DNA of 64,000 bases, taken from the sequence record NC_004629.1; one strand, 5' to 3'. Position 1 is the first letter of the stretch. Every line of letters starts with the position of its first letter. Positions 13,205-54,662 of this stretch are shown piece by piece. Both the position numbers and the translations under genes were made by a program. The notes beneath the pieces are model-generated. The model had not been told where the DNA came from, did no database searches, and worked only from the letters and a program-made list of their open reading frames with translations.

Positions 13205-13224
13205 AAATTTGAGATTTATATTAC
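13205..13224 (+). promoter_or_regulatory. phiKZ-type early promoter
   Basis: AAATTTGAGATT-TATATTAC; TATATTAC is the established phiKZ early promoter core (13217-13224). Confidence 0.7.
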
Positions 13225-52694: not shown

Positions 52695-52751
52695 TAGAAT
52701 ATTAATTAAAAATTATCTTATGTAGTTTATCTAATTAAGGAAACAAAAAGA

Positions 52752-53108
52752 ATGCCAACTTATATTGAATTAATCAATATTGTCAATGATGATACTCCTG
52801 TAGATGATGCAGTTATTAGTGATCTGATGAGTCAAATGAATGATAAACAAACTGTTCTTGACAGTTGTCGTATCAATCATAAAGGCTATGCTTATTTTAA
52901 GTTCCATGTTAAGGGATCAATTAGTAAGGATAAACTTAAGGCTCTAAATGAAACTTTAAAAGATTCTAATCTTGTTGTGACTGATGCTAGTACACAACGT
53001 GGTTTCATGCCACCTAATAAGTTTGATGATATCACTTATACTGAAGAGAGTGTTGGTTATAGGGCAATGGTCTGGACAAGCTTCACTATTGAAAAGCTAC
53101 TTGTATAA
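52752..53108 (+). CDS. Hypothetical protein (118 aa)
   Basis: AAGGA RBS; terminator 53110-53129. Confidence 0.75.
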   Translation: MPTYIELINIVNDDTPVDDAVISDLMSQMNDKQTVLDSCRINHKGYAYFKFHVKGSISKDKLKALNETLKDSNLVVTDASTQRGFMPPNKFDDITYTEESVGYRAMVWTSFTIEKLLV

Positions 53109-53158
53109 TAAGAGCCCTTCGGGGCTCTTTCTATTTCGCAATTAGGTATCTGTATTAA

Positions 53159-53593
53159 ATGGATAAGTATCCTATTCTACAAGCTATGTCTAAAGAAGAG
53201 GCATTTAGACTTTTAGACATACAAGGTGAGTTTAGAAAAACTCAAATGAAAGAAAGGTATTGGAATGAGGAAACTGGTCTATGGTGGTGGGAACAACATC
53301 CCGATGTGAAATTAAGGATAGTTGCCGCCTGCAATAGATGGAAGGATGTTTATTTCATTGCAGCGAGGCATTCATCAATCATAATGACTCAACAACAGCT
53401 AATGTATGGTGGTCTTAAGGTATTGCATGAATATGCAGGAGATGATCATGAACAAGGTTTTATTGATCAGTATGAAAACTTCCACTCTAGGGAAGAAGCA
53501 GTAATTATCGCTAAGAATAATAATCAGTTATATCGAGCTGAATTAGAAAATAGATTAGTAACTAAATATTTATTTAGTGAAGACCTATATTAG
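53159..53593 (+). CDS. Conserved phage protein with RH / QGF / SREEA / SEDLY motifs
   Basis: IVAACNR..IAARHSS..EQGFIDQYENFHSREEAVIIAK..LFSEDLY. Confidence 0.75.
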   Translation: MDKYPILQAMSKEEAFRLLDIQGEFRKTQMKERYWNEETGLWWWEQHPDVKLRIVAACNRWKDVYFIAARHSSIIMTQQQLMYGGLKVLHEYAGDDHEQGFIDQYENFHSREEAVIIAKNNNQLYRAELENRLVTKYLFSEDLY

Positions 53594-53623
53594 GTTTCCA
53601 ATAATTTAAATAGGAATATAGCT

Positions 53624-54280
53624 ATGCTAATGAATGAAATTATCGATATTCTAGAAGGAGGGAAAGAGAATATTCTCTTAACTAACCATCTAGGTAATGG
53701 CAAATATTCCAATGCGGGTAATGCAATGGCTGCATCATATGCCATTGCGGCACATACTGCTGTTGGTCAATTGCGAGATGGTTCAGGAAAACCTTACTGG
53801 CATCATTTATTACAAGTAGCTGAGATGGCGCAATTATTCGACCTATCTCACGCTGCTTATAAAGCAGCATGGTTACATGATGTAATTGAGGATACTGCTG
53901 TAACTGCTTCTGATCTAACTAAACTATTCTCAATCCCTGTTGTTAATTTAGTAACTGAACTAACAAATGTAACTTACGAAGGTAATCGTAAAACTAGGAT
54001 TAGTTTACAACATGAAAGACTTTCTCGCATTTCATGGAGTGGTCAATCTCTTAAGTTACTAGATTCCATTTCAAACATGTGGTCGATTGTTAATGATAAG
54101 CCTGATTTTGCTGAACTGTATCTGACTGAGAAAGCTCAACTAATCAGTAAGTTAAATAATTGTCACCCCGCTATTAAAGATCTGGCTATATCTGTTCTCT
54201 ATGGCAGGTGTACTATGGTTGGTGGGGATGCACTAAAAGAATATAATAAACTATTTTCTGATAATGAAATTGTATGTTAA
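53624..54280 (+). CDS. Mesh1/SpoT-type HD hydrolase (small alarmone hydrolase-like)
   Basis: RDGSGKPYWHH, AAWLHDVIEDT (HDxxED), VTELT and KLLDSISNM motifs of RSH hydrolase domains; no synthetase domain. Confidence 0.85.
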   Translation: MLMNEIIDILEGGKENILLTNHLGNGKYSNAGNAMAASYAIAAHTAVGQLRDGSGKPYWHHLLQVAEMAQLFDLSHAAYKAAWLHDVIEDTAVTASDLTKLFSIPVVNLVTELTNVTYEGNRKTRISLQHERLSRISWSGQSLKLLDSISNMWSIVNDKPDFAELYLTEKAQLISKLNNCHPAIKDLAISVLYGRCTMVGGDALKEYNKLFSDNEIVC

Positions 54281-54298
54281 AATAATTACTTAATATAC

Positions 54299-54365
54299 AC
54301 CCTCCCTTCGGGGAGGGTTTTATTTATCTTTTTTTGTATTTAAACTATTTAAAAAGCTATATTAC
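54299..54365 (+). promoter_or_regulatory. Terminator (54299-54318) plus class B early promoter (TATATTAC 54358-54365)
   Basis: TTTGTATTTAAACTATTTAAAAAGC-TATATTAC-AAATATGA. Confidence 0.8.
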
Positions 54366-54398
54366 AAATATGAATTTAATAACCAAGAGGGCAATACA

Positions 54399-54662
54399 AT
54401 GACTGAACGTTTGAAATCCGTATGGTGCGCTTGCAGCTTACTGCGTGAACGCTGGAGACACATCCAAGACATTGCTGTCGGGGATGAACATCATGTCATA
54501 GTAAAAAACGATATGCTGATGGTGTTTCGTGGTCAAGTACCGGTAGGTAGCATGTACCGGGGTGACAGTGACCCACTCATCTACGAGGGTGGTGCACTGG
54601 AAGAATTTACTAAAGTTGTATTGGATTTAGAATTCAATACTCGTGGTGAAACCAATAGTTAA
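54399..54662 (+). CDS. Early hypothetical protein (87 aa)
   Basis: GAGGG RBS; first gene of the operon. Confidence 0.7.
   Translation: MTERLKSVWCACSLLRERWRHIQDIAVGDEHHVIVKNDMLMVFRGQVPVGSMYRGDSDPLIYEGGALEEFTKVVLDLEFNTRGETNS

Follow-up and report, generated by a model that had tools for sequence, protein, structure and literature searches.

Phage-encoded small alarmone hydrolases (SAHs) have been described as counters to toxic alarmone synthetases (toxSAS). The SAHs of phages SSU5 (PaSpo) and PVP-SE1 (PbcSpo), together with the antitoxin ATfaRel, neutralise CapRel, PhRel, PhRel2, FaRel and FaRel2, which are all of the toxSAS tested (Jimmy et al. 2020, PMC7229694), and the same study proposed that alarmone hydrolases let incoming phages bypass alarmone-mediated defence (PMC7229694). 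Later studies report that several toxSAS pyrophosphorylate the CCA end of tRNA and that they are implicated in antiphage immunity. For jumbo phages, an 'HD-alarmone PDEase' was listed among the counter-nucleotide enzymes and a counter-defence function was proposed for it (Iyer et al. 2021, PMC7824862). In a 2025 paper on the Pseudomonas phage Adele, a phage SAH is presented along the same lines, and the preference for (p)ppGpp or (p)ppApp is said to be unpredictable from sequence (PMC12846349). Here we compare with these systems the gene PHIKZ246 (gp246, NP_803812.1), an open reading frame that encodes a stand-alone RSH-type HD hydrolase of 218 residues at 53624..54280 (+) in a 64,000-nucleotide stretch of record NC_004629.1, which is called the window; a genome coordinate equals the window coordinate plus 186,000. 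In our view gp246 is probably a competent metal-dependent 3'-pyrophosphohydrolase of the SAH type, cytoplasmic, which would protect translation and nucleotide supply from alarmones. What was seen directly is the gene, its motifs, its fold, the single domain and the purifying selection on it, as well as the fact that RNA libraries contain it and that a tested phage SAH is among its relatives.

Over 2.8 kb around PHIKZ246, the DNA matches that of Pseudomonas phage phiKZ (AF399011 / NC_004629) with 100% identity, and the protein is 100% identical to the one in the phiKZ record, where its RefSeq name is 'metal-dependent phosphohydrolase'. In near-identical phages the counterpart is labelled 'GTP pyrophosphokinase' or '(p)ppGpp synthetase'. 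The gene is already annotated, and its RelA/SpoT kinship stands in the records of related phages. The concept, too, has been shown experimentally with other phages and put forward for jumbo phages; what is added here is no more than a careful placement of gp246 among the SAHs.

We first consider the motifs. The nucleotide-binding loop with the first metal histidine, R51-D-G-S54-G55-K-P57-Y58-W-H-H61 (53774..53806, +), aligns with 'TPYVNH' of Mesh1. The HD metal ligands and the catalytic ED pair, H85-D86-V-I-E89-D90 (53876..53893, +), align with 'HDVVEDT', and the third conserved block, K144-L-L-D147-S-I-S150-N151 (54053..54076, +), aligns with 'KLADKLDNL'. A full RSH hydrolase signature had been claimed for this gene in an earlier reading made from the DNA only (the sequence-only reading), and its three motifs were recovered letter for letter at R51-H61, H85-D90 and K144-N151. 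The joint presence of the three motifs is far beyond chance. By the RelSeq and Mesh1 structures, we take H61, H85, D86 and D147 to be the metal-binding set, with D147 as the distal metal aspartate and E89-D90 as the catalytic pair, while Lys144 and Asn151 presumably contact the substrate. A word-based protein search returned 25 homologues, all of them HD_4 proteins of 165-285 residues, and it was found that H44, Y58, H61, H85, D86, E89, D90, R122, K144, D147, N151 and E169 are invariant across these 25, with P57 nearly so. Every metal or catalytic position (H61, H85, D86, E89, D90, D147) and every substrate-loop position (Y58, R122, K144, N151) is carried by gp246.

The family models point the same way. 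The Pfam model HD_4 (PF13328) matches gp246 with an expectation value (E) of 6.7e-12 (45.8 bits, cut-off 27.2), and phrog_990 'metal-dependent phosphohydrolase' matches at 6.5e-56. Two models of roughly 700 positions were matched in their hydrolase part only, namely TIGR00691 spoT_relA of NCBIfam (3e-16, profile positions 2-119 of 687, the N-terminal hydrolase part) and the SpoT equivalog NF008303 (6.6e-12). Sequence matches in the PDB comprise Drosophila Mesh1 (9.4e-9) and the hydrolase domains of Rel/SpoT enzymes (1e-7 to 1e-5), and further Lmo0812, human MESH1 and several bacterial SAHs.

The AlphaFold2 model derived from the homologue alignment has a predicted local distance difference test (pLDDT) of 90.1 and a predicted template modelling score (pTM) of 0.88; pLDDT is 52-62 at residues 11-30, a linker within the N-terminal 35 residues. 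The model confidently predicts the all-helical Mesh1/SAH fold. When it was compared with the PDB by Foldseek, all 28 listed matches at E<=1e-3 were RSH hydrolases. The best of them are the Mesh1 structures 3nr1, 3nqw and 5vxa, with template modelling (TM) scores of 0.83-0.85 (target-normalised) and a root mean square deviation of 2.0-2.4 A over about 175 columns. The SAH of Pseudomonas aeruginosa (6yvc, 6z3n and 6z3o) follows with TM scores of 0.78-0.81, and RelH, SpoT and Rel were also matched. Sequence, motifs, fold and domain architecture thus agree on a stand-alone hydrolase of the Mesh1/SAH-like family, which bears out the family assignment of the sequence-only reading.

These matches also bear on what else the enzyme might be. 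Enzymes of the HD superfamily catalyse diverse reactions, gp246 has a weak match to the generic Pfam HD model (2e-4), and records call gp246 or an orthologue merely 'metal-dependent phosphohydrolase' or 'polyphosphate hydrolase', all of which would suit an HD phosphohydrolase with a non-alarmone substrate, either dNTPs/NMPs (shaping of the nucleotide pool) or the immune signalling nucleotides of other defence systems. We regard this as improbable, since gp246 has the RSH-specific R..SG.PY..H loop, the ED pair after HD and the KL.D..SN block, and since its significant PDB and Foldseek matches are all RSH hydrolases, with no dNTPases or HD-GYP enzymes among them; nor does any PADLOC model match gp246. 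The Mesh1 matches themselves suggest another explanation, namely a Mesh1-like metabolic phosphatase that acts on NADPH (giving NADH) or on a 3'-phosphorylated adenine nucleotide such as PAPS and so reshapes host redox or sulfur metabolism. The best PDB matches are indeed metazoan Mesh1, including the Mesh1-NADPH complex 5vxa and the Mesh1-PAPS complex 9chy, and PMC9765508 reports NADPH hydrolysis for Mesh1. However, ppGpp and (p)ppApp are also hydrolysed by Mesh1 according to PMC7644958, so likeness to Mesh1 does not favour NADPH; the identity between gp246 and Mesh1 is only 23-25%, and the nearest tested phage relative is an anti-toxSAS hydrolase. We accordingly give the metabolic explanation little weight as well.

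The 218 residues of gp246 make up one HD fold and a 35-residue N-terminal extension, without synthetase, TGS or ACT domains. That no synthetase domain is present had been noticed from the DNA, and the wider search agrees: the synthetase model PF04607 RelA_SpoT found no match in the near-identical 266.7-kb record G001, while 11 of 14 control genomes were positive in the same search. A search of G001 with HD_4 returned exactly one gene, the counterpart of gp246. No toxSAS gene stands next to gp246 as a toxin partner, the neighbours being gp245, of the T4_Y16D family, and small uncharacterised proteins. As no synthetase gene lies close by, and none was found in the rest of the near-identical genome, gp246 does not serve as antitoxin to a neighbouring toxSAS; it is an orphan, as are the SAHs of SSU5 and PVP-SE1, and not a type IV antitoxin like ATfaRel. 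A tRNA 3'-end repair island around gp246 was considered separately and ruled out, as neither a CCA-adding enzyme nor MazG was found in the near-identical genome.

The N-terminal extension (residues 1-35, 53624..53728, +) lies outside the Mesh1/SAH core and is modelled as two short helices and the low-confidence linker. Most homologues are unaligned there. The extension is kept in an 80%-identical relative (P0002) and is therefore coding. As read from the sequence, an AGGA Shine-Dalgarno element (53612..53615, +) lies 8 nucleotides before the ATG.

A tblastn search gave matches to gp246 in about 200 phage records, of which many exceed 250 kb (jumbo phages). Identity is 100% in those phiKZ-like records that are listed and below 60% in the remaining matches. 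The latter include PhiPA3 gp301, 201phi2-1 gp325, many jumbo phages of Erwinia, Serratia, Dickeya, Klebsiella and Burkholderia, Rhizobium phages and Salmonella phage SSU5. A likeness to phiKZ gp246 is noted in the records of PhiPA3 and 201phi2-1, to which the PhiPA3 note adds 'GTP pyrophosphokinase', and 201phi2-1 gp325 is annotated as a 'putative polyphosphate hydrolase'. In a Logan contig of a divergent phiKZ-like phage, the order gp244-gp245-gp246-gp247 is kept, and its gp246 is 80% identical. When gp246 was compared with the 80%-identical relative, the ratio of nonsynonymous to synonymous substitution rates (dN/dS) was 0.066, with dS near saturation, and gp246 is therefore under purifying selection.

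By BLASTP, gp246 and the SSU5 SAH share 33.6% identity over 137 residues (E 7.5e-18), and the PVP-SE1 SAH gives a partial match only (73 residues, 3e-8). A maximum-likelihood tree unites gp246 of phiKZ with its 80% relative, PhiPA3 gp301 and a metagenomic phage protein in a supported clade (99/98), and the 201phi2-1 protein belongs to another supported clade. SSU5 (PaSpo) falls in the same unresolved half as gp246 and PVP-SE1 (PbcSpo) in the other, with weak support for the deep split (54/45); the tree took in no Mesh1, Mesh1-L or other subfamily references, and by this placement it is plausible that gp246 belongs to the PaSpo subfamily. The 201phi2-1 SAH is 47.6% identical to the SSU5 enzyme, compared to 37% to phiKZ gp246. 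Its gene (gp325, L004:2962-3603) adjoins a homing endonuclease and lies six genes from a putative Thg1 tRNA-His guanylyltransferase. The closer kinship of the 201phi2-1 SAH to SSU5 than to phiKZ, together with its different genomic context, suggests that Pseudomonas jumbo phages gained or exchanged SAH genes on more than one occasion. For gp246 itself, a recent capture of the host SAH gene was ruled out by the weak similarity to the P. aeruginosa SAH, PaSAH (E 0.03-0.07).

The branch of the PhiPA3 orthologue is very long (3.1 substitutions per site), and gp301 (L003:2896-3528) has Y58 changed to A in the PY..H loop and D147 changed to E, both of which are invariant elsewhere; its function may accordingly be altered or relaxed. 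Its locus is partly syntenic with that of phiKZ, a gp248 homologue standing two genes downstream. Such a protein is evidence that drift of the family occurs in these phages, and one may ask whether gp246, too, is a remnant that has lost its catalysis or is decaying, or whether it binds nucleotides as a 'sponge' without being an enzyme. We find this very hard to credit: every invariant catalytic residue is intact in phiKZ gp246, the low dN/dS and the complete identity across the phiKZ-like records listed speak for maintenance, and the model is confidently folded. None of the three rival explanations, i.e. another HD substrate, a Mesh1-like metabolic role or a dead enzyme, is favoured by the data.

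We return to the reading of gp246 as an active SAH, for which we infer the activity, the substrate range, the location and the biological role. The phiKZ DNA lies inside a nucleus-like compartment, and gp246, as other phiKZ proteins, is made by host ribosomes in the cytoplasm. There it would stay and strip the 3'-diphosphate from (p)ppGpp and/or (p)ppApp, and possibly also from 3'-pyrophosphorylated tRNA CCA ends, as is thought for its phage relatives. The threats that it would meet are the output of RelA/SpoT during infection, the abortive-infection defences based on toxSAS, and (p)ppApp-making toxins from neighbouring cells. The alarmone-sensitive host functions on which phiKZ still relies are translation factors, tRNA charging and purine nucleotide synthesis. 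The benefit to the phage would be a shield for the functions it borrows, namely translation GTPases, tRNA charging and the supply of purines, ATP and GTP. Transcription of phiKZ is independent of the host RNA polymerase and uses the phage's own RNA polymerases (PMC10914365, PMC7598289), so the benefit would not be relief of the host enzyme.

Several points weigh against this reading. No biochemical or genetic test specific to gp246 was found in the searchable literature, where the matches to 'gp246' all concern other phages (e.g. the Goslar chimallin and MIJ3). That the protein stays in the cytoplasm is our assumption. In the substrate loop, Asp52 follows R51, a position where most homologues and the long RSH enzymes have Lys (QLRDGSGKPY versus Q.RKYTGEPY), and judging from the alignment this exchange could shift the substrate preference; the choice of gp246 among ppGpp, ppApp, NADPH and pyrophosphorylated tRNA is not predictable from sequence. 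No early promoter of the extended consensus, described below, stands in front of gp246 or of gp245, the gene upstream. Lastly, in the words of a paper on deep-dormant P. aeruginosa, phiKZ 'cannot replicate on dormant hosts' (PMC10761892), and therefore gp246 does not enable phiKZ to override a stringent or dormant state that is fully established. This last point divides the role put forward in the sequence-only reading, which was that the phage blunts the stringent response or counters toxSAS. Such roles have been proposed, and partly shown, for phage SAHs, but a simple override of the stringent response does not agree with the failure of phiKZ on deep-dormant cells. What fits better is an anti-toxin or anti-defence role, in which gp246 counters an acute, infection-triggered production of alarmones or tRNA pyrophosphate, or else a modest homeostatic role.

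A more specific proposal can be made because the phage nucleus shields the DNA but leaves translation exposed. Under this proposal, gp246 would be a dedicated counter-defence of nucleus-forming phages, mainly reversing the 3'-pyrophosphorylation of tRNA CCA ends by capsid-triggered toxSAS of the CapRel type. It might also give temporary immunity to (p)ppApp toxins, such as type VI effectors of neighbouring Pseudomonas, with the cell surviving to yield phage, and the 35-residue extension might target ribosomes or tRNA. We offer this as a speculative idea that is rather unlikely to hold as a whole.

The upstream neighbour of gp246, PHIKZ245 (53159..53593, +), encodes 144 residues and belongs to the T4 Y16D / Arn.3 family, according to phrog_839 (2.7e-43) and PF26092 T4_Y16D, the latter matched on an 85%-identical homologue; the Atlas agrees. 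With tblastn it has matches in 1,389 phage records, for the most part from T4-like and Vi01-like phages. The annotations of this family vary ('anti-restriction nuclease', 'C-N hydrolase superfamily' or hypothetical), and the conserved part of PHIKZ245 is its C-terminal two-thirds. The profile of phrog_990 exceeds gp246 in length, which prompted the idea that gp245 is a functional partner or a fused N-terminal domain of the SAH. This idea was ruled out, as the family is very widespread and the gp245 homologue of PhiPA3 lies about 34 kb away from the hydrolase gene.

In the window, gp245 and gp246 form a two-gene unit between strong phiKZ-type terminator hairpins; the terminator scan found 4 sites compared to 0.6 expected. 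The upstream boundary is the terminator after the late gene gp244 (53110..53133, +; hairpin 53110-53129), an 8-pair hairpin followed by a T tract. The unit is closed by an intrinsic phiKZ-type terminator found in the scan at 54299..54328 (+; hairpin 54299-54318), with the structure ACCCTCCC-TTCG-GGGAGGGT followed by TTTATTTATC. This downstream hairpin agrees with the published phiKZ terminator motif, including the TTAT tail (PMC10914365). The gene on the other side of the upstream boundary, gp244, encodes a capsid decoration protein (PF25621, 1.2e-49), and a late-type TATG motif stands at 52719-52722 (+), 30 nucleotides upstream of it.

Past the closing terminator, a phiKZ early promoter at 54327..54365 (+) serves the next operon (gp246.1, gp247 onward), so gp246 is outside the early operon that begins with gp246.1/gp247. 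The promoter shows the extended AT-rich consensus, which is roughly T-rich, GTATT.AAA....ATTT.AAA.., and ends in TATATTAC, here at 54358-54365; the phiKZ early promoter has been described in PMC8244752 and PMC7598289. Sites with the extended consensus number 8 in the window (+), at 13217, 27064, 42592, 50855, 51287, 54358, 58022 and 60707. The plain 8-mer is not significantly enriched (12 found, 7.1 expected), and therefore it is the extended context that identifies the true early promoters. A candidate early promoter directly upstream of gp246, TATATTAG at 53586, was rejected, as it has one mismatch to the 8-mer and is without the extended AT-rich consensus. For the promoter of gp245-gp246 there are two candidates that are only suggestive, namely a TACT motif of the middle type around position 53095 and a start at about 52987.

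RNA libraries that contain the gp246 stretch come from at least five studies (P1-P5). The upstream terminator is where contigs with poly(A) tails from a Nanopore cDNA run end, at 53131 and 53133, and these ends mark the 3' end of the gp244 transcript. In a 2018 Illumina RNA run (X14), contigs 52987-53553 and 53540-54283 span gp245 and gp246, a gap covers 54284-54378, and the contigs resume at 54379, just past the early promoter; such contig ends cannot establish transcript starts, levels or timing. The late gene gp244 is hardly covered in this run. Because the X14 contigs cover the pair, break downstream of it and barely cover gp244, the data suggest that gp245-gp246 is not simply late read-through from gp244. 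In three RNA runs there are contigs that match only the 31-nucleotide terminator hairpin (54295-54325) and run into unrelated sequence on both sides, and the simplest explanation is that this terminator sequence is repeated at other places in the phiKZ genome and makes the assembly graph branch.

Just after the early promoter lies PHIKZ246.1 (54399-54662, +), of 87 residues and assigned to phrog_23594. It is without a counterpart in the divergent phiKZ-like contig (L011:1861-1994), where the homologues of gp246 and gp247 are about 130 nucleotides apart, and in phage PA02 a different short open reading frame is annotated in the gap between them. PHIKZ246.1 has the look of a small accessory gene or of one gained recently.

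Among nucleus-forming jumbo phages, phiKZ serves as the model, and it is also a candidate for phage therapy. With nucleases kept away from its DNA, the few defences that can still stop it include those directed at translation or at the nucleotide pool, and an active alarmone hydrolase, if gp246 is one, would be one answer of phiKZ to these. Once shown, the nucleotide or modified tRNA that gp246 targets would tie toxSAS and alarmone immunity to the biology of Pseudomonas jumbo phages. The gain is a well-placed example and not a new principle, because the neutralisation of toxic alarmone synthetases by phage SAHs is already published.

We finally compare gp246 with the known systems. The long RSH enzymes, Rel and SpoT, have a hydrolase domain akin to gp246, and gp246 scores far under the cut-offs for the full-length enzymes (58.9 versus 499 bits). 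Mesh1, the metazoan SpoT orthologue (3nqw, 3nr1, 5vxa), is the best PDB match in both sequence and fold, and like gp246 it is a single domain with the HD..ED and KL.D..N blocks. Unlike gp246, it is eukaryotic and has no N-terminal extension, and a role as NADPH phosphatase has been proposed for it. The host enzyme PaSAH shares with gp246 the fold and the single domain, whereas the sequence similarity is only weak; it is called promiscuous in the phage Adele paper (PMC12846349). The PVP-SE1 SAH and the ATfaRel of C. marina (PbcSpo) have the HD..ED core in common with gp246, and the PVP-SE1 SAH differs in its long branch in the other half of the tree. For the 'HD-alarmone PDEase' of Iyer et al. 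2021, the predicted activity and the counter-defence rationale are the same as for gp246, but that work names jumbo phage groups 2 and 3, while phiKZ typifies group 1, and the example protein there is not of the phiKZ type. When compared to the SSU5 SAH (SSU5_099, PaSpo, about 213 residues), gp246 differs by its N-terminal extension and by the Asp for Lys after the loop arginine, and SSU5, unlike phiKZ, is a 103-kb phage without a nucleus and with an enterobacterial host. Nevertheless, both proteins are stand-alone phage HD_4 hydrolases with the same three motif blocks, and the SSU5 enzyme is the closest experimentally tested relative of gp246.

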